The position numbers and the translations under genes were made by a program. The notes under the pieces were generated by a model. That model was not told the DNA's origin. It was given only the letters and a program-made list of their open reading frames with translations, and searched no databases. A stretch of DNA of 64,000 nt. It comes from Oculina patagonica. Taxonomy: Eukaryota. This document shows, piece by piece, positions 7,330 to 19,731 of this stretch; the first letter of the stretch is position 1; every line of letters begins with the position of its first letter. The stretch is from positions 36,022,001-36,086,000 of the forward strand of contig NC_135763.1 in the NCBI RefSeq assembly GCF_052425735.1, given 5' to 3'.

Positions 7330-8065
7330 ATAAAAAATCGCATTTTACTAAACTTGACGTTTCGTATGCTAAGCTACATATATTTTCAAAAGTATGACCG
7401 TTAAAACTTTTTGGCAACTATTTATATATTGTAATGAAAGGGGTCTGGAACCAAGACTGAGACGATTGATCTTCAGCAGTAACTTAATAAATGTATACGT
7501 AGTGACATTTCAGTTAAAAAAAGCAGCAACCTCTCACTGCCGACATTTGCATTTATGAGGGTTGAAGTTCTTGGATAAATAATGTCTCCTTAATTTTGCA
7601 GTGGAGGTCAGTCTTGCCAGATGCAAGGATTTCAAAATGATCCCATTTGATGTTATGGCCTGTGGTTTTAATGTGATCAGCAATAGCTGATGGATGGTCA
7701 CATTTAGTGAGGGCCTTAAATTGTTCAGTTTTTCTGTCATGAAGTCGTCGTTTTGTTTTTCCTATGTAAACGTCATCACAGTCCCAGCAGCCAGCTTTGT
7801 AAATGACCTTACATCGTTGAGAATGGTTGAGGCGGTCTTTGTACGGAAAGAAGGATTTGATGGGGCGTGTGTTCTGAAAAATGATCTTGAGGTTGACGAA
7901 AGAGTAGAAGTCGGATACACAGGATTTAAGGCGTTTAGTGATTTGAATGCTCGGAAGTCCTAATTGCTAAGTAGGGTAACAGGAAAAAGAAAACAAGCCA
8001 GACACCCCTGTGGCGACAGTTCCTAAAAAAGCTGTCATAATCCTGTTACCCTACTTAGGTCTTTT
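7330..8065 (-). mobile_element. Penelope-like retroelement 3' fragment (GIY-YIG endonuclease) with a short inverted 5' piece
   Basis: Minus-strand translation ~7985-7514: LPY..GLPSIQITKRLKSCVSDFYSFVNLKIIFQNTRPIKSFFPYKDRLNHSQRCKVIYKAGCWDCDDVYIGKTKRRLHDRKTEQFKAL...SAIADHIKTTGHNIKWDHFEILASGKTDLHCKIKETLFIQELQP. Plus-strand 8010-8063 encodes VATVPKKAVIILLPYLGL (the inverted upstream part). Confidence 0.85.
7352..7393 (-). ncRNA. Minimal hammerhead-ribozyme-like motif of the Penelope pLTR (variant core)
   Basis: Minus strand ACTT-TTGAAAA-TA-TATG-TAGCTTAG-CATA-C-GAAA-C-GTC-AAGT gives stem I ACTT/AAGT, stem II TATG/CATA and a GAAACGUC cleavage context. The core is UUGAAAA rather than CUGANGA. Confidence 0.45.
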
Positions 8066-8547
8066 TGAGCAAAACGGACTTTTACCAGATGTTCTCTCCG
8101 AGAGTCGAGAAGATCTGGGTACGAGATTAAAGACTTAGCCGAAACGTCTTACGCACACCCCTACATCTCCTTTCACAGGGGAGGAGTAAACATCCTTCCA
8201 GGAACAGCTTTTAAGATGTAATTTTTTTTTTCCAAAATATGCCCGCTCTCTCGTCTAAAAAGCCTTTTGTATCAACAGTGTTATTTCTGGCAAAAAAGAA
8301 CTTAGTTTGAGAAACTGGTCACGTCTTCATTCAATTCACATGCTTACACTAAAAACACGTATAAATTGCGTTTTATTCTTTGCTGTTTACTGTCTGTCAA
8401 GAGACGACGGCAAATTGTCTGAAACCTACATTGTAAAATTCACAGGGTTCGACAGGGCGGTCCCATTTTATTGTATTTAAGGGAAATTAAATTTCGGCGA
8501 TTCTTTGTCACCAGAAACATTTGCATAAATTATGGCTTTGAACAAAC

Positions 8548-8567
8548 GGGCAAGTCTGGGCATGCCC
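8548..8567. promoter_or_regulatory. Perfect p53-family response element (two half-sites, no spacer)
   Basis: GGGCAAGTCT GGGCATGCCC matches RRRCWWGYYY x2 at 20/20 positions. Confidence 0.8.
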
Positions 8568-8569
8568 GA

Positions 8570-8580
8570 TTTCCCGCCAA
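8570..8580 (+). promoter_or_regulatory. E2F site
   Basis: TTTCCCGCCAA matches TTTSSCGC, 2 bp downstream of the p53 element. Confidence 0.55.
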
Positions 8581-8899
8581 ATTAACAACGAAAATTCACA
8601 CGCGCTCGCAAATAAATTCCCGGTGGATTTCCGGTGCTTTCTTGAGGTCTTGAACATCTGGAGATCTAGAAACAACATGGGGTATTTTTAAGTTGCTGTG
8701 CTTCGAAAGAAGCCCACAATATTTAGAAACATCATCACGAAAGCTTCGAGGGAACTGTTGATTGTTTTTAAAAGAGATTGCCCTTGAGTTGGAGTGCGAA
8801 AAGTTGCTGTCTGCATAAAGTCACGATATCTTTAAAATCTTGTCAAAACACTGCTCCATTTGACTTTACGTGAGCGCAGAAAATAAGGCTTTCGTCCCA

Positions 8900-9109
8900 G
8901 ACCACGTGCAAAAGTTGTCTCGATAGATATAGCCTTTCTATTGGTTTTCCTTGCGGAGTGTGAACTAACCGCATCGCTGATTGGATCGCTCCAGTCTTCC
9001 AACCGGATACAGAAGCGCTGATTTGGCAAGTTTGAGCAGCGCGCGTGGTTCGATCGAAGATGGCTGTCTGTTGAGGTCGTGCTCCAGAGTTTTCGTGTTC
9101 CTAAGCCAG
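8900..9109 (+). promoter_or_regulatory. Core promoter and probable non-coding exon 1 of the p63-like gene
   Basis: E-box CACGTG 8903-8908. Inverted CCAAT (ATTGG) at 8940 and 8980, imperfect at 9021 (~40-bp spacing). YY1-like AAGATGGC ~9057. Donor CAG|GTAGGT at 9109/9110. Confidence 0.55.
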
Positions 9110-10718
9110 GTAGGTCGACTTTGCCTTTGTTGTGAATCATGTGTATTCGTTCTTTGAAGGAATCGAGGTATTCTGCGACATGTTTCGTCGAAATCTCGAC
9201 AATAATCTATGTTTGCAGCGATGTTGATCGCAAATGTTTTGGGCGATGGAAAATCGAAGCTGAGCTCATTTGATAAATGTCTAATCAATTTCCTTTATCC
9301 GTGGTTTAGTTCCATTTTCTTTGTTTAAGGACCCATTATCTCCAATACAAAATACATCTCGGTCATTATTAGATATCTTATATATAATGGGATATAATGT
9401 TTTGTCTTGGTGAATAAATTGTTTGGCCTGATTTCAATTCGGAGGTTGGGTAAATTTCAATGTTTACATCGGAAGTTGAGCTTGTTTTTGTGCCAGAAAA
9501 CGAAACTAGTTTACACGACTTCTCAGTTTTGTTGCTTGCACCTAAATTCTTCCTTAGTTAGAAAAATATTTGGCTACCTGAAAGTTTGAAAGTCGAATTC
9601 CATGCATTTGGTTATAAGGGCAGGTCAAATTTTGACAGGAAAAAAATCATTGTATAAAGTTATCGCTTCGATCTCCGAAAATGTATGACACCTGATTTTC
9701 GAAAAGGCACTTTCCCATGCACGAAACTTTTATCTTTGGCTATAAATCTCGGCACTGTAATAGAATTAGTTGCTTTCTTGACTGCTGATCACAGTGTGCA
9801 AGTATTTATGTAGTAATTTGACCTTTTAATTTTCTTTCTAATTTGCATTCTTGTTGAAACTTTCAAAAACTTTAAAGTCCTGATATTGGTAGATCTGTGA
9901 ACACAATTCAACCATCCCTAACTCATGACAAACATTTTGATGTAGCACTACGGGAAGAGCAATGTTTGATTGTTTGTCCGGTGCATCCAGACCTCAATGC
10001 TGGATAAAAATATTTGGCTGCTTAGGTAGTAGTGAAGGCTAAAAGCCTTAATTTGAAGTGCAACTCCAATATAAAAAATACCATAACTAATAAATCAATC
10101 CTGTGTAACTTCTCATTTTTTGTGTTACTGACTGCACTTTTTCTCCTGTATTCTAATGCAGTCTGATACAATGTACATGTATAACTAACCGATAATAAAC
10201 CCTAATAATTATGTAGTACAGCTGGAGCACTCCTTATGGATACCTGGACCCTTGTTTTGTACAGTTAACTTGAATTGGTTTGAAAGAGACTAGAATTCAT
10301 ATTGATATGCACTCTTCCTTTGTAATAACCTCCATAATAAGGACATTCTTTCCGGCAATGTGACCTCCATATAACAAACATTGAATTTTAAAAACAATTC
10401 TTGTGCAATCTGATATCATTTTCAAACCAGAAGTAAACTGGTCCAGTCCGTAACCACCTAAAATAATGGTAGGTTCCTTTTTTTTTTAACACGACTTGTA
10501 CAAGAGTATCTCACTGTCAGCCAATGTAATAAGATTTGAGCTAATTAAAGTCCACAAATTGCTGAATATTGAAAATTTATAACCTGCACGTGGTCATAAT
10601 GTTCAAACAACTACTAGAAGAAAATAAGTTCTCTTTTCATGTTTTTAAGGACAATTATTGCAAACATTTTAATTAGTGACTTGTTGTAAATTGTGTGTTC
10701 CTTCATTTCAGCTTAAAG

Positions 10719-13700
10719 ATGTCTCAACAGTCTTCTTCGCAGACGTCCAATTGCTCACTTGAGCCAATTTTATCTCAGGAGACTTTTGACCAGGTCTTCT
10801 CTAGCGTCCATGGAATTTTCGACAGTCAACAAGACTTTAACAGGTAAAACTGCAGCACACGCTAAATAAGATATTAATATCAAAAATTTGAATGTTTAAA
10901 ATACGTCAGAGCTTTGTCAAAACAACAAGACCCCATAAAATGGTATGATCTTAAATTGAGTGGAGGGGGGAGGGGTGGGAATGGGAAATATATTTTGCCC
11001 AAGTGGACCTTTTGCAGTGATAAACCTGAATGTGAGGTTCAGAATGTGATACCAATGATGTCGGCATTGAAAGAAAAAAAAATATAGAATACTTTATGGA
11101 AAGTGCGCCCGTACAGTATTTACACACAAGCTGGTGAAGTATCAGAAAACAAACGAGTGAGCTGTGCGAACGAGTTGAGATTTCTGATACAAACCAACTC
11201 GTGCATAAATACTGTACAAAGCACTTTCCATGTGGTATTGGGTTTATTATAATTTTATACGTACTGAGATTGTCATTGAATTCATTGAATGCCCCATTTA
11301 ATGAACAATTGACCCAAAACTTTAAAGCAATGTATGAAGCTAAATTGGAATTTCCAGAAGGGTGGGCAGGGTTCGCACACGCCTTGAAAGTCCTTGAAAG
11401 TCCTTGAATCTCAAAATAAAAATTCAAGGCCTTGAAAGTCCTTGAAATTGGTTTTCGGTCCTTGAAAGTCCTGGATTTTTTATTGAACGTCAAAAGGCAA
11501 TGAGAAGACCGCAAAAATAAGCGATTTATTTACTTCTTCAGCAAGGACATCAACCGTTGTTTTGGGGTAAATTTCATGAAAAAAAGTCCATGAAATTTCC
11601 AAGAAGGGTCCTGGAAAGTCCTTGAAAAGTCCTTGATTTTTTGGCCTGAAAAAGTGTACGAACCCTGGGTGGGGGGGGGGGGGTCATAGAGCAAATCCCT
11701 TCCGTGGGGGGGTATGGATATTTTCTGGGACCACACATTGTATATTCTCTCAAACGTTCTTGTGAGACCTTGTGAGAGGTGCTACCCAACACAGGTAATT
11801 TACGATGTCAGTGTAACTACTGACAGTATAGGTTTTGTATTTTTTAGGATACAAACTGAGTGTCAGATGGCGCCAACAATTATTCAACTAACTGATGAGA
11901 ATATACACGGTATGTGTGACGTATATGCAGGGCGTCAAATTGCGCCTAATACAGGCGCCAATGCGACTAAATTTTTCACTTTGGCGACCAAATCCTGAAA
12001 GTTGGTCGCCAAATTGGCGACTAGGATCATATAATCGACCTCAAATCGCATCGGATCACTTAATTTATCAAAAACTGCATAACTCGTAAAAAAATCGCAC
12101 AGGGTGAGCAAAGTACAAAATAACTTCTTGCTTTATCTAAAGATCTTACATTTCAGCTAAATATATTAGTTTTGAAGGTTATTTACCTGTCCAAAACTGT
12201 AAGAATACATCTGATATGGTTTGCAATCGAGCGTTGCTATTTTGGGCAGGCAACTTCCTATTACACTTTCAACTTAGCCACACAAAACAGCCACACAATG
12301 AATTTGCTTTCTATCTTTGCTCTTTGTATTGTATTGAAGTTTACAAGGAAAAATGGTTCAACTCAAAATGTTTAAATCCATACATGAAGTCAAAAGCATC
12401 GGCAAACGACTGTCAAACATTGTGTAGTGCTCGTTGCGTACATGACACGTGCGCCTATTTTGACGCGGTCAGCGGTTTCATCTGGTACTTCATGTAATGT
12501 CACCAAAAGTCTTCCTAGTTCTTGTGCACAAAAAGCCATTCAAGATTGAAATAAATGCAAATGTGATGAAAATAATCTATTTTAAAGGGTCTATCTAGTA
12601 AAACGACAAAATGAGAAGTGTTTTATTTCTTTTTTAAAAAAATGGCGACCAAATTTTTGGAATTGGCTACCATTTTGGCATACTTAGGAGCCAAGTGGCT
12701 ACTGGGAAAAAAAGTTAATTTTACGCCCTGATATGTGTGCCTGACCAGTGTCAGTGTCATGATTATGTGAATGAATTTAATCATGAATTCAATCAAAATA
12801 TTTGTGCTTAAAGGGGCTAGGTCCCAGTATTTTAGGAAATTCTATTTAATGTCATTAATTTAGAGCTCTTAACTTCAAATTGGCAGAGCAAAAACTTGTC
12901 TTTTTTTGCCAAAATCACGACCACATTACAAACAAGGATGGTTTTTGAGCATTGTAAATGACACTTTAATACAAATTGAGATAAAAAAGTTGGGCCAACG
13001 TTTTTCAAGCTTAGCCAAATGCAATGGGTTTTAATCTAATCAAATTTTGCCCATCCATGCCGCTGTTTGGCCTTTCTGTGTTTCTTTTGAGTTCTTCTAC
13101 AGTTTTAAGCCGTTATTGTGACATTCAGTTAATTCTATAACCAGTTGGTCAGAAATTGCCTAAAATTGCAGGGAATTAATAAAACAGGATTTTTTAGGCA
13201 TGAAACAGGGTTCGAAACTTGCGACCTTGTCAATCCAGTAGGCAAGTGCTAACTTAATTTCCATCCCGCGATGAATGGCATCTTTTGGTTGGTACCTAGA
13301 CCTTGTGTGGTTGTTACACATGTACATCTGTATTATAAATTATATTTATTTACCAGTACATGTGAACTGCATGTGCATGTAGATTAATTCAATCTTGTGT
13401 GATTTCAGAAAATGTGGAGATGACCTTGAACTGTGTAGGTGTCATGAGGCCGGAGGTAAAACACTTTCGATGCTTATAATATGTTATTTGAATCGTCTTT
13501 ATATAGTATCAAGTCAACATTGCCTCTTTTAAGTGGCCAATCAGCTTGCCTGTCTACAGTGCTGCCAATAACAGTCGGTCATCGGACACTGGCCGACCAA
13601 AATTTGTTCATGTCTGACAAAATCCCAAGTGTGGTCAGACATGATGTCCGGAAGGTAAATCATTTTACGGTAACAATGAATAAAATTAAACCTTTTGGAT

Positions 13701-16700
13701 TTAGTGATGTCCAACCAAAATTTTGTTTTGTTCGACCATGATGGTGTCTTAGTAGGACATATATGTCCTTTCAAGTGAAAAAAATTATTTGCAGCCCTGT
13801 GTCTATAATGTCTAATTTATTTTTTCTCAACAGGTTGAATTTCCCCCATTTATGCCAGACCATAGCTTTAGAATAGATCTCAAGCAAGAACCTACATGTA
13901 GTACATCTTTCAAACGAGAACCAGTCGACAATTCGAGATTCATCTCATCTACGATGACCACACCACCCCCTGAACAGCCTATTCCGCAGCCCTTAATAGT
14001 GTGTAATACTGATTTCCCCGGCACGTATGGATTTGACTTGGGCTTTGAGGAAGAGAAGGGTCCCGTGACCAAGTCAGTGCATTGGACGTACTCTCCAGCC
14101 CTAAAGAAACTGTTTGTTAAAATGCGGTGTATTGTTCCCCTTCGGTTCCGCCTCCAAGGTAAGAAGATCATGATTATATTTTTTATTAAATATTAATTTC
14201 TCCTCTTTTGTACAATTCTCATTTCTGTGCCTTGTAAATGACTTCCACGTTTTCTTTGTTGCAGTTTTTCCCCCAGCTCCTGGCTTCTATGTAAGAGTTG
14301 TTGTGATTTATAGACAGCCGGACCATTATAGGGAAATTGTTGAACGGTGCCCGAACCACATCACAAAACACAAGGATGGTTAGTTTTCATTTTCTTGAAT
14401 CTCGACTTACATGTACTTCTTGAGATGCAAAGGGTGTAAAGGAAAACAGAATTCCTAGGGTGCCCTTTGGGCAAGTGTGCAAGCCATTGTGTGCTAGGTA
14501 GAAACTAGCCTAGCCTTACTTAATGCCCTTATTTGATGGGAAAAAATAATACATATCGCCCAGCAAGCAGGCCATTGATCAATAAAAATTATATCCCTCT
14601 AGCCACTGGCTTTTGGACAATATACACAGTGTATATTTACATTATGCACTTTCTTTGCATGCTGACATAGTATTTCAGCAGTGAAGCAGGTCTCTTAAGC
14701 TTATAGAGTCAGTGTGTAATTCTACTGGTCCTCTAGTATAGCAGTTGGTGTTGTGTTTGTGGCTAGGGGAATAATATTGTTCCTGTTAGTTAGTCTATAT
14801 GTATGTCTTAATACATTATATTGTACATGGAAATCACATCTAGATTTACTGTTGTTTTCAGGCCATCATGCACCAAAACATTTGTTGCGTTGTGAAAATC
14901 CCAGAACAGATTATGTCACCTGCCCTGAAACTGGGAGGCATAGTTTAAAAATACCTCTGGAGGCACCTCAGGGTAAGTCTGAATCTCAATCAGCACTTTT
15001 TTGTTTGGAAACAAGTTTAATTTTTAGCTTGCCCTACAGACAGTTGTCAAAAGTGTGATTGCCATGGGTAGTTGCACGCTTGTCATAGGTTAGCCCATCC
15101 TATGGGATGATCCAGCCCAGGATTGATGATCCAAGATCAGTCAGACTATGGTACATGAATTGAACTGATGAATCCACTCTGGGCAAGGATTCATTGGAGT
15201 CTTTGATCATCCCAAATGAATGCACCCTTACTATGCAGACAGCTTGCAATTTCCTGGGCCCTTGTGCAATAGAAAGTTTCTTTCCCAGTTGACAGGTCTG
15301 CTTGTGGATGACAAGAAATTTTTTTTCAAGTTCCAAAACAGTGAAAGACAGAAATTCAGAAGCCAATAAGGAATATCCACACAAATACATGTATATAGAA
15401 CTCCTTAGTAATGTCTGAGCAGTGTAATATTCATATCTCAGTGTAATATCTCACATCTCAGTGGATGTTGGACTCAGCCATTGTTTTATTACTTAATTCT
15501 TGTTCATTTGACTTTATATTTTGTAGCTGGCAGTGACTTTGTGACAAACATGTTTCAGTTCATGTGCTTCAGTTCATGCCCTGGGGGTTTGAATAGACGA
15601 CCTATCCTTGTGGTTTTCACACTGGAGTATAAGTAAGTCTTGGGGTAGAATATGTTATAGCCTTACACTTATAATTATTTTGAACTCTGTAAGTGTACAT
15701 GTAGGTAATGCATGTAACTCTGCATGTAGGTAATGTATTTTGAATTCCTTGTTTTCCAGCAATATGGTATTGGGAAGGAAAGCGCAAGATATACGCATAT
15801 GCGCATGCCCTGGGAGAGACAGAGGAATTGAGGAAAATGCCGAAGCAAAACGACAGTCAAACCAGCCAGCAGCAACTGCCGCCAACCCTCAAACTCCAAA
15901 TGTGACTCCGCCCCCTACCCCTCAGATATCATCAACCCCTCGCACTCCTCCTCCCGAGGAGCCAACAACATCCACTGGTGCAGAAGAAACAAATCATGTT
16001 CAAGTACCGAAACTAACAAAAAAGCGATGTAAGTGTGGAGTTCCATGTACATTTCCAAAAGGTAAAGGCTGTAGCTTAAAGCGACCTACTCTCCCTGGAT
16101 GAGAGGCTACACGTACATGTAGTCCATCACAGGGTACCCCGCAGAATTTTGTCTGGTTGGCCTAGCAGTTTTCTACTGTCTTTAAATACCCCTGCGTGGA
16201 GAGAGGCAGTAGTATGCTCAGTGATCTATAATGTTTGTTTACCAATTGTAGGACTTGTTTTGAGCTTTGTGGTATGTTTAGAGAAAAAAACAAAACAGAT
16301 TGATTGGCAGCAAGGCTGGTACAACGGGAGGAGGGCAAGATTTATTGGCCCATATTTCAACTAGAAGACTAGCTCTGCTAGGTGAAATATGGGCCAATAA
16401 ATCTTGCCCTCCTGCCGTTGTACCAGCCTTGCAATCAATCTGGTTTTATTAGCACTTAGAGTGACGTCTGGACGTCTGGTACGAGCATTTCTTGACAAGA
16501 GATCCGGCAGCAGACTAGCCAAGCAGTTTTTTCCTTCACTGCGTGGTCCCCTGCATCCAAACAGTTTTTGTTTAGAGAGTTTTACCATGTGGCATTTTTG
16601 TGTGCAGAAAAATAATTTGAGTTGTGGTATCCTGTCGACCTAGAAACACAAATGTTTGAAACCCAAATTTCCATCTGAAAATACCTTAGTACATCCATGT

Positions 16701-19700
16701 TAAATTTTGCCCCCAAACTCCCCTAGGGCTAAAAGCATATTCTTAGTGAGTTGATTCTTTTTATCCTATTTCAGGGAGTGTCAGTTTTAATAACCACATT
16801 CTGAATTAGCCACTTTCATGCTAACCTTATTCTGTTTAATCTTGTTTGAATCCTCAGCACATTCCATCATGTCATCTGGTTTTGAGGTCAGGTCATTATC
16901 AGCTAATCGGATGAAACGAATGAAGACTCATGAAGATGAGGAGATTTTTACAATACAGGTTGGTTATATCTTAGTTAACAATTTTGTGGAAAATATAATT
17001 ATTCACTTGGTCCTGTTCAGTTTAATGGTTTGAAGTAGACAAGAAGTCGCAGAACTCTGTCTCTTAGGGGTGTTTTTTTTTTCACAATTCTGGAATGAGA
17101 ATGGCCAGAATGTGAAATGTGCATGTTTTTCTATTCCACATTTCTATTTCGTAATGGACAAAACGCCATTCCTTCCATTCTGCTCCCAGGGGCAGAATTA
17201 ACAGAATGTTGCGAATGAAAATCAAAGTTGGCTGGTAGAAGGCATAGCCCGTGATTTGACGGGATGTGTCTCCTCTCCTTTGCAAAAAGCACTGCCAGAA
17301 CATTTGGCAAATCCACAAGACTCCATACTTCTTTTCCTCTTCTTAGAAAAATTGCTGTAACTTGAGTCTGTTTTTCCTTTGTTGCAGGTTAAAGGTCGTG
17401 ACAAATATGAGATGCTCCTGAAAATTAAAGAGGGTCTGGATATTATGGACATGGTTCCACAAGCACAAATAGATAATTACCGTGCAAGGTGAGTCTCTAC
17501 ATTCAGAACTACTGATGTAACATTAATGCAGAATTTGTGCATCTTTGGCCCTTAAAATACATTTTTGTCAATGCACATACATTACATTTCAGCGAAAAAT
17601 AATTAAATTGTACCAGAGGTTTTGCAAGATTTCTTCAATACAGCATGATTTGCTAATATGGCCTTTAACGTTTTCATTGAATCCTTGTTTTGAATTCTCT
17701 TAGATTGAGCAGTAAAAAGTACTCACCATAAGGCACCTTGTCCCGGAATAAAATCCTTCCCCTGCAAGGGGCAGGGGCGGATACCCCCCAAGCCTCCTGT
17801 TGAGGGTCCATAATAGGCTTCGGCAGTCCCCCATCCCGCCACCCTTTTTAGCCCTTATCCCACCCATTTTGATGAGTTTGATCCTACATCCTGCCCTCAA
17901 TTTAAGAATATCCCACATCCCACCTAGCAAAAAGAACACATCCCAGTCCCGCCAAGACAATTTCATCCTGCCACTAAAATATTGGTATCGGGGATTCCGC
18001 CTTGATTTTAAGCCTTATCCTGCATCCTGCCAGACCTATGTTCCTCCTTGGTATCCCCAAACTTACACGACTTGGGACCCTCAGGACCTATAGCAGCAAC
18101 TTCTAGTGGTATCTCTGTGATCTGAAGCTTCAGAACAAAAACAAAGCAAATTCATGTTTTTCTTATGACATTTTTATGAATTAAACTGTGCCACTGATAA
18201 ATGATTTATTTTGTTGAAACCAACAGCTGCCCCCCTTGTGGGAGATTGACGAGTTCCAGGTCTTCACAAAGAGAGAATTCTCAGAATGTAAATTCACAAA
18301 ATTCTGATTCACAAATCTCTACAGATTCTCAGCCAGTAGGTCTTCTTTTGTCTTTTTACTTCCTGGCTATAACTCTAATTCTTTTGTTAAGTGTGTTGGT
18401 TGAAATAAGGTACCGTAGTTAAAATTCATGAGGCTTTGTAACTAAATGATTTTATTATTGGTTTACTGGTCCACTGGTATTTTGTATTGTTAATTGGTTA
18501 ATGTTATTATTGATTGGCTGACTGACAGACAGACAAACAGATGGACAAATGTGCAGGTCTGTCTTACTAACAGTCTGAGTATACCTAGAACAAAGAAAAT
18601 CCTGCCAAATGTGGTAAAACATTCGTGTACAAACTCTTTGATATACAAGAAATTGGAAGACAATTATTTTGGATTGTGATGATATAGTACAAAATACCAA
18701 AGGTGAAAATAGACAACATTATGCAAAAGCTAGTACGCCGTAAAATTCTGGTTATAAGCCCCCCACTTTATAAGCCCACCCCCCGGTTATAGGCCCATCT
18801 TTCTGGGAAAAAAATACAATACATCCGATTATAAGCCCCCCGGATATAAGCCCCCCTTTGCCGGATGATAGTACTGAAAAAGGCTAAATGTTGCTTTTTT
18901 ATGCGTTTTTAACTTAATACCGTATTTTGATCAACACTCCTGTGGCTCTTTTCGAAACGTTTTTTTTCATTCCGCTTTTTAGCCTTCCCAGATTGCATTT
19001 CACATAAATTTCACATTTTCCACTAAAAAAGGGGCAGTAGCCCAGAAACGTATATGTTTCCATCGTTTGGGGTTCCTTGGAAACATTATACTACCATCAG
19101 GCGCATTTTTCATTTTCATTTTAATTATCGTTTCAATTCTCCCGGAATAGCCCCTCTGTATAAGCCCACCCAAAATCCCTTACGAAGTTGTATAAGCCCA
19201 CGGCTTATAACCAGAATTCTACGATATGTAGTAATAATTATCAGCCCAAACACCTGAGGCAAGATAGATACCTGAATTCTGAGCACAGTAACTCCAGTCA
19301 GTGTCACGCCCAGCTCTTCTCTTGTAGCTTCACTTTCTCATGTCTTGAAATTTATCTGTTATCTGGGGTACATTTCATTGGTTTCTAGTTTGTGCTAAGT
19401 TTATTAACAATAAAATCAGCACAAACTAGAAACCAATGAAAATGTACCACATGTACCATTATCACAGTAGTGTGTGACCTTATTGCCTGGATGGAAGTAT
19501 ATCACACTCAGAATTCAGGGTTTAAGTAGTAAATTTATTAATCATCTGTTGTCATAGGATGAACTGGATGGTACTCCACCCATTTCTCAACTTTCGCGCT
19601 CAGACTCTGGCTCCTCGTACCAGTCTCCCACGTCCTCCCAGCAGAGTTCTGGAGGAGGGACTGGGATCAATGCTGTCAGATTTACCCTGAGACGAACTGT

Positions 19701-19731
19701 GTCATTAGACAAGAAGGGTTTCCAGCAATAG
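10719..19731 (+). CDS. TP63: p53/p63/p73-family transcription factor (TAp63-like, no SAM domain), 12 coding exons, 547 aa
   Basis: Exons 10719-10843, 11848-11909, 13409-13455, 13834-14158, 14265-14378, 14862-14972, 15527-15632, 15760-16028, 16858-16958, 17388-17488, 18227-18335, 19558-19731. All GT-AG, phases consistent, 1644 nt total. TA: [13 protein letters not shown]: [63 protein letters not shown]. Tetramerisation: [40 protein letters not shown]-terminus: [12 protein letters not shown]. The symbol denotes the pre-duplication p53/63/73 homologue. Confidence 0.95.
11084..11240. mobile_element. Palindromic MITE in p63-like intron
   Basis: TACAGTATTTACACACAAGCTGGTGAAGTATCAGAAA is mirrored by TTTCTGATACAAACCAACTCGTGCATAAATACTGTA. 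Confidence 0.6.
11367..11667. mobile_element. hAT-like MITE with 6-bp TSD, nested in an older repeat
   Basis: TIR CAGGGTTCG/CGAACCCTG, flanked by GGTGGG on both sides. Internal AAAGTCCTTG repeats. Confidence 0.75.
11928..12730. mobile_element. hAT-like non-autonomous element with 5-bp TSD
   Basis: TIR CAGGGCGT/ACGCCCTG. TSD ATATG. Subterminal TGGCGACCA repeats. Confidence 0.75.
13557..13799. mobile_element. hAT-like MITE with 6-bp TSD
   Basis: TIR CAGTGCTGC/GCAGCCCTG. TSD TGTCTA. Confidence 0.7.
16296..16443. repeat. Near-perfect ~70-bp-arm palindrome (foldback MITE) in p63-like intron
   Basis: GCAAGGCTGGTACAACGG..GGAGGGCAAGATTTATTGGCCCATATTTCA is mirrored by TGAAATATGGGCCAATAAATCTTGCCCTCC..CCGTTGTACCAGCCTTGC. 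Confidence 0.85.
18738..19224. mobile_element. Tc1/mariner (Tc2/pogo-like) MITE
   Basis: TIR CGTAAAATTCTGGTTATAAGCC / GGCTTATAACCAGAATTCTACG. Internal TATAAGCCC repeats. Confidence 0.75.
19271..19519. mobile_element. Foldback MITE
   Basis: Ends CCTGAATTCTGAG/CTCAGAATTCAGG. Central palindrome CATTGGTTTCTAGTTTGTGCT...AGCACAAACTAGAAACCAATG. Confidence 0.7.

Follow-up and report, generated by a model that had tools for sequence, protein, structure and literature searches.

A conserved p53-type response element beside an E2F-type site in the promoter of a coral p53/p63-like gene: a candidate autoregulatory module

Promoter feedback in the p53 family and the coral locus

Internal-promoter loops are known in vertebrates for deltaNp63 and delta133/delta113p53. 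At the upstream P1 promoter of mammalian TP53, the autoregulatory element is a weak, non-canonical site; autoregulation of this promoter was reportedly described by Deffie et al. in 1993. A loop similar to the internal ones is found in TP73, where p53 and TAp73 bind the internal P2 promoter, leading to negative feedback through deltaNp73 (PMC3267157, citing Grob 2001, Kartasheva 2002, and Nakagawa 2002). The P1 promoter of human TP73, which gives TAp73, is driven by E2F1 and YY1 and ties expression of the family to cell-cycle and damage signals (PMC3267157). In Nematostella, the protein nvp63 binds the vertebrate consensus response element (RE) and activates a reporter in SAOS-2 cells (Pankow and Bamberger 2007, PMC1964547). 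UV raises the RE-binding activity in Nematostella polyps, and nvp63 is activated by UV as well as by deletion of its C-terminal inhibitory tail (PMC1964547). That paper describes neither the nvp63 promoter nor self-regulation, and our literature search, incomplete in its coverage, found no report of promoter autoregulation in a cnidarian p53-family gene.

The window analysed here, a 64-kb stretch of Oculina patagonica DNA, contains a p53/p63-like gene preceded by a perfect RE and an abutting E2F-type site. The features of the promoter and of the gene are arranged as follows (window coordinates).

8519-8526, plus strand: octamer-like ATTTGCAT, 29 bp 5' of the RE, the same in Oculina and Desmophyllum
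8548-8567, no strand assigned: perfect zero-spacer p53-family RE, GGGCAAGTCT + GGGCATGCCC, at -490 to -471 from the transcription start
8570-8581, plus strand: E2F-type site TTTCCCGCCAAA, 2 bp past the RE, matching TTTSSCGC
8617-8634, plus strand: conserved TTCCCGGTGGATTTCCGG block from the coral alignment, with ETS-like CCGGAA cores on the minus strand
8903-8908, no strand assigned: E-box CACGTG, invariant in corals
8940-8984, minus strand: two CCAAT boxes, read as ATTGG on the plus strand at 8940-8944 and 8980-8984, 40 bp apart
9038-9109, plus strand: non-coding exon 1, start at 9038-9048, donor CCAG/GTAGGT after 9109, from spliced RNA contigs
10712-10844, plus strand: exon 2, whose ATG at 10719 begins the TA domain, from the RNA joint and RefSeq isoforms X1-X4
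13828-19728, plus strand: remaining coding exons, encoding the DNA-binding domain, tetramerisation domain, and C-terminal tail, from tblastn of P0078 and P0138

Positions 8548-8567 read GGGCAAGTCTGGGCATGCCC, followed by GA and then by TTTCCCGCCAA(A) at 8570-8581. The element fits the El-Deiry rule (two RRRCWWGYYY decamers, 0-13 bp apart) at 20 of 20 positions with zero spacer, and RRRCWWGYYYRRRCWWGYYY is matched only once in the window, at 8548-8567. The TTTSSCGC match of the E2F-type site is formed by TTTCCCGC at 8570-8577, of which TTTCCCGCCAAA is the longer form. The original prediction had placed an E2F site 2 bp behind a perfect p53 RE and a CCAAT/YY1 promoter about 0.5 kb further downstream. 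All three are present in the window, the promoter being marked by ATTGG at 8940 and 8980, by the YY1-like AAGATGGC at 9057-9064 inside exon 1, and by RNA 5' ends at 9038-9048.

Like TP73 P1, the coral promoter is the TA-type promoter of a p53-family gene, with an E2F site and a YY1-type element near the start (PMC3267157). It differs from TP73 P1 in that its E2F site abuts a perfect RE across a fixed 2-bp gap, ~470 bp 5' of the start. We know of no such RE-E2F composite described for TP73; the two promoters have no detectable sequence homology, and E2F binding in the coral is predicted. With the vertebrate deltaN loops, the coral gene shares a p53-type RE in the regulatory DNA of a family member. 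Those loops, however, use intronic promoters that yield truncated dominant-negative isoforms, whereas the coral RE lies upstream of the sole mapped TA promoter and not at an internal promoter for a truncated isoform. In line with this layout, no zero-spacer RE with at most one mismatch was found in the introns of the p53-like gene, and no internal (deltaN-type) start was seen in the Oculina RNA contigs. TP53 P1 resembles what is proposed for the coral, as the protein acts on its own upstream promoter, but the coral element matches the consensus at 20/20 positions and is deeply conserved. Finally, nvp63 is the ortholog of the coral gene (43% identity) with the same promoter layout, whereas the Nematostella copy of the RE is degenerate and has no E2F site beside it. 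Judged by these comparisons, the coral element appears to be a new, deeply conserved case of a known type of p53-family loop.

The downstream gene and the proteins that could bind its promoter

The RefSeq entries 'cellular tumor antigen p53-like' X1-X4 (Oculina patagonica) map to the window at 99-100%, and all four isoforms share the ATG at 10719. The encoded protein contains the Pfam domains P53 and P53_tetramer, and its DNA-binding domain aligns to the structures of p63, p73, and p53 with E-values of 1e-48 to 1e-68. Oculina thus encodes a p53-family protein with intact DNA-contact residues: in the structure alignments, the equivalents of K120, R248, R273, A276, C277, and R280 (in the p53 numbering used for these residues) are kept together with the zinc ligands, while the position of p53 R283 is occupied by G. 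The best match of the domain (13828-16063, P0138:95-330) among solved structures is PDB 7pc6 (E = 1.9e-68), which is closer than human p63, p73, or p53 and whose molecule name, as given by the depositor, is only 'DNA-binding domain'.

The start of the gene was located by placing the contigs of three RNA-type runs (X24, X28, and X22) on 8001-11000. Their 5' ends fall at 9041 (X24), 9048 (X28), and 9038 (X22), and the X22 end lies directly behind a loose end, GGTATCAACGCAGAGTACATGGGG, which we take to be the 3' part of the SMART template-switch oligo, marking the 5' end of a capped mRNA. Spliced contigs of X24 and X28 join exon 1 to exon 2 through a GT..AG joint from 9109 to 10712, and the start-site block in exon 1 is the most conserved block of the promoter. 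Because the RNA 5' ends lie at 9038-9048 and none lies in 8201-9000, the RE is located at -490 to -471, in untranscribed DNA and within the regulatory DNA of a p53-family gene.

Three further observations concern the same region. The GenBank model KAL9971225.1 (P0137, 587 aa) begins translation at 8981; since this is upstream of the mapped start site (RNA 5' ends 9038-9048), the 44 additional N-terminal residues probably stem from faulty annotation. In X22 (organism C), the last 30 letters of exon 1 (window 9075-9109) are wholly different, yet the contig splices to exon 2 at 10710-10712; either exon 1 has diverged at its end, or a close relative uses another donor. DNA contigs of X13 (from a close relative, ~91% identical) cover 8614-10987 and end short of the RE.

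Three loci in the Oculina genome carry a P53 domain, namely this gene and two others at C6:34709687-34711932 and C14:19610927-19612266, so that the species has three p53-family members, as does Nematostella. The RE may accordingly receive hierarchical input alone, from a paralog protein (C14:19.61 Mb or C6:34.71 Mb) and not from the gene's own product. Besides the presence of the two additional loci, this reading draws on the three paralogs of Nematostella and on two distinct RE-binding complexes in its lysates (PMC1964547). It is also consistent with asymmetric regulation, as no RE with at most one mismatch was found within 10 kb upstream of either paralog locus. We nevertheless consider exclusive paralog input rather unlikely, given that the gene's own DNA-binding domain keeps all base-contacting residues, that the Nematostella ortholog nvp63 itself binds the consensus (PMC1964547), and that the self- and paralog modes are compatible with each other. 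With two paralogous p53-domain genes present, strict self-regulation is one possibility among several; that the gene answers to its own protein family is very probable, given the retention of the site in distant corals and a sea anemone.

Conservation in stony corals and sea anemones

The loci of Desmophyllum pertusum (L017), Stylophora pistillata (L019), and Acropora digitifera (L018) were chosen through their proteins and not through the motif. When orthologous loci of 27-31 kb were scanned for REs, the best match was located at the homologous place in Desmophyllum, Stylophora, and the sea anemone Actinostola. The Desmophyllum and Stylophora loci contain exactly one good match each, a perfect RE in the former (GGGCAAGTTTGGGCTTGCCC) and one with a single mismatch in the latter (GGGCAAGTCTGGGCTAGCCA, with a weak CTAG core and a final A), so the conservation in orthologous coral promoters that had been suggested as a check is observed at the same position in both. 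In the Acropora locus no RE was found, which carries no weight either way: exon 1 of the transcript does not map there, and the promoter would be expected to fall within a run of Ns (L018 6077-7537). In addition, a coral-like metagenome contig (L023) with a clearly different promoter contains a perfect RE, GGGCAAGTTTGGGCATGCCC, with the spacer AA and the same E2F site; as it was found by a motif pattern search, it illustrates the spread of the arrangement and is not independent evidence of conservation.

The promoter from ~8362 to 9110 is alignable among Oculina, Desmophyllum, and Stylophora, and 46% of the 721 scored Oculina positions are invariant. Within it, the 33-mer comprising the RE and the E2F site has 27 invariant columns out of 33, compared with a mean of 15.4, and is second only to the start-site block (28). 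Six of its positions vary: Y9, W15, W16, and Y20 in the RE, plus both bases of the spacer, which changes freely. Across the three corals, neither the C/G cores nor the E2F site shows any change. With Actinostola included, six of the seven inferred RE substitutions keep the R/Y/W class and the C/G core bases are invariant (p ~0.01 under neutral change, a rough estimate). Constraint across species thus follows the p53 consensus classes, which points to purifying selection of that kind on the site, while part of the RE conservation in stony corals appears to be shared background, the whole promoter being conserved. In tblastx comparisons only the promoter block is shared, and it is shared in all frames. 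Conservation is therefore at the DNA level, and upstream coding conservation was ruled out on the same ground.

The E2F-type site is fixed at +22 from the RE and invariant in the four coral sequences, among which the 2-bp spacer reads GA, AC, TT, or AA. It is absent beside the RE in both anemones, Actinostola and Nematostella; as sampled, its conservation seems confined to Scleractinia. Genome-wide, the 12-mer TTTCCCGCCAAA occurs 2335 times, compared with 56 occurrences of the reversed control. Of 22 copies sampled, roughly half fall in one of three dispersed repeat families. The flanks of the copy at 8570 are unique. The 40-fold excess is real but inflated by repeats and argues only weakly for E2F being used in general. 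TTTCCCGCCAAA is carried by at least three families of dispersed repeats (contig C1), one of them arranged as inverted pairs 140-360 bp apart, and mobile elements may be spreading E2F-like sites in the Oculina patagonica genome.

The remaining parts of the promoter are conserved to differing extents. The TTTGCAT core of the octamer is invariant in all four coral sequences, as is ATTTCCGG, located at +67 to +80 from the RE. The E-box is also found 5' of two CCAAT boxes in Actinostola and Nematostella, and the CCAAT boxes, invariably 40 bp apart in three corals, are separated by 41 bp in one anemone and by 52 bp in the other. Other invariant blocks of the promoter are ACGCGC (8600-8605), GAGATTG..CTTGA.TT.GAGTGC (8768-8800), and ATATC..T.A.ATC...TCAAAACAC (8827-8859).

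The 27 kb of the Actinostola sp. locus (L024) contain a single perfect RE, GGGCAAGTTTGGGCTTGTTT. An E-box and two GATTGG boxes come ~280 bp downstream of it, and after them what is plausibly a non-coding exon, equipped with a GT donor. The whole arrangement is situated ~4 kb before the exons of the DNA-binding domain and has the same layout as in corals, with unalignable flanks. Because the N-terminal exons of the Actinostola gene were not found by tblastn, the RE is assigned to the promoter by layout and spacing alone. A second gene with a P53_tetramer domain (L024 26491-27268) is placed tail-to-tail, ~9 kb downstream of the Actinostola p53-like gene. The nvp63 locus of Nematostella (L025) has no RE with two or fewer mismatches. 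Its degenerate copy, GGGCAAGAACGGCCTTGCCC, has three mismatches with both CWWG cores intact; matches of such quality occur by chance ~2 times per 10 kb, so the copy is no more than suggestive of a conserved RE. The anemone octamers are located 3' of the RE, ATGCAAAT at +39 in Actinostola and ATGTAAAT at +42 in Nematostella. Both species show the order RE, octamer, E-box, and two CCAAT boxes, the last two elements being represented in Nematostella by CACGTG and two ATTGG boxes.

The pattern of variation also bears on whether the 20-mer is recognised by p53-family proteins at all, or instead serves an unrelated factor or a pair of factors and matches the p53 consensus by coincidence. The constraint on the whole promoter in stony corals would accommodate such a factor, and GC-rich palindromes like GGGCATGCCC could serve other dimeric proteins. 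Yet the element consists of two tandem decamers in a 10-bp register, both of the form RRRCWWGYYY, and its variation over five lineages largely keeps to the R/Y/W classes and includes A/T swaps in the CWWG core (AT, TT, TA), which are tolerated by p53-type recognition and not by most other motifs. Moreover, none of the consensus motifs of NF-kB, EBF, AP-2, RFX, and NRF1 fits the 20-mer. Recognition by an unrelated factor is on this basis improbable, and a p53-family RE is the reading we adopt.

Upstream transcription, chance and the proposed module

The original prediction also held that the element might drive an alternative first exon with a donor at ~8681. An upstream promoter of this kind, giving a longer 5' UTR or a non-coding RNA, would suit the run of conserved sequence from 8362 to 9110 and the GGTATTT at ~8681 that is common to Oculina and Desmophyllum. 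The GT, however, is absent in Stylophora. In addition, no RNA contig of X24, X28, or X22 lies in 8201-9000 (contigs show presence only), and all spliced contigs start at 9038-9048, one of them with the template-switch oligo. Transcripts of other corals start at the homologous point as well: the Stylophora transcript L021 begins at the homologous start block, 470 bp past its RE, and splices to exon 2, and another pocilloporid-like transcript starts at the same place. A search of 8200-9300 gave no Rfam match, and the non-coding RNA reading was rejected. We regard the upstream exon as very improbable, and this part of the prediction was not borne out, while a rare stress-induced upstream isoform may exist. 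A further Stylophora transcript, L020 (L019 9883-10122), is unspliced: it begins 83 bp inside intron 1 and continues into exon 2. Either the intron has been retained in it, or transcription has a second start a little 5' of the ATG exon.

The rarity of the element was assessed at several scales. At the base composition of the window, a perfect zero-spacer RE has a chance of 4.8e-8 per position, corresponding to 0.003 per 64 kb and ~25 per genome; the 2^-24 per position given earlier holds if all bases are equally frequent. In 100 dinucleotide-preserving shuffles of the window, RRRCWWGYYYRRRCWWGYYY was never matched. The 529-Mb assembly contains 57 perfect zero-spacer REs, compared with 35 matches to the reversed control pattern, a density of about one per 9 Mb, and several of the 57 sit in a local repeat family on another contig. 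A perfect RE is expected by chance in a given 10 kb with a probability of ~1e-3 and within 1 kb of a given start site with one of ~1e-4. A dispersed-repeat origin was ruled out, as 8300-8900 is single-copy, with no second copy in the genome, and repeats are found only upstream of ~8200; the earlier claim that the RE lies outside any repeat agrees with this. Those repeats include high-copy pieces at 8001-8063 and 8081-8129, with contig depths of hundreds to thousands in all four runs, and a perfect 18-nt inverted repeat (7967-7984 / 8041-8058) of MITE-like look, 5' of the conserved promoter. A functionless chance occurrence, which the 57 observed against ~25 expected perfect REs (some in repeats) might suggest, is barely credible beside the low chance per 10 kb and the fact that Desmophyllum, Stylophora, and Actinostola have each kept a homologous copy at this place in the promoter.

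We propose, with a probability of about 0.6, that these 33 bp act as a functional distal module in the promoter of the TA-type p53/p63-like gene, with p53-family and E2F input, likely in a feedback or feed-forward loop. A p53-family tetramer, encoded by this gene, by one of its two paralogs, or by both, would bind the 20-bp element, and an E2F/DP factor would bind the abutting TTTCCCGCCAAA. Both factors would modulate the single mapped promoter 480 bp downstream, with its E-box, two CCAAT boxes, and start at 9038. In the loop, the latent protein, once activated, for example by DNA damage, would raise the transcription of its own gene, and E2F would restrict or boost the loop in cells that are cycling or belong to the germ line. 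With only 2 bp between their sites, the p53-family and E2F factors may touch or compete. As the full TA form is the only product, the loop is probably positive, unless binding is repressive. Within this scheme, we infer the binding, the family member that binds, the sign of the effect, and the p53-E2F interplay. The original description as a candidate autoregulatory module stands for the conserved cis-element, through the orthologous sites, the class-keeping substitutions, and the invariant E2F site, and not for the alternative first exon.

Published cnidarian p53 work concerns activation at the protein level; the element described here lies at the promoter of a family gene. As a 20-bp target, it makes transcriptional self-regulation as part of an ancestral p53/p63 damage response directly testable, and the RE-E2F composite, its spacing fixed, allows the integration of signals at one site to be tested. 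The promoter itself, well mapped for a cnidarian in its start site, CCAAT boxes, and E-box, is useful for reporter design. The finding is also relevant to coral stress biology, where UV stress, heat stress, and bleaching-linked apoptosis are discussed in terms of p53-like signalling.

Stony corals and sea anemones last shared an ancestor several hundred million years ago. Tentatively, and at somewhat less than even odds, a self-loop at the TA promoter of an ancestral p63-like gene may have been present in that ancestor, and stony corals may then have fused an E2F site to it at a distance of 2 bp, creating a composite sensor of the state 'cycling and damaged' in which p53 and E2F would contact each other directly or compete. 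If this is true, feedback at the family's own promoter would date back to the ancestral p53 family instead of having been elaborated in vertebrates.
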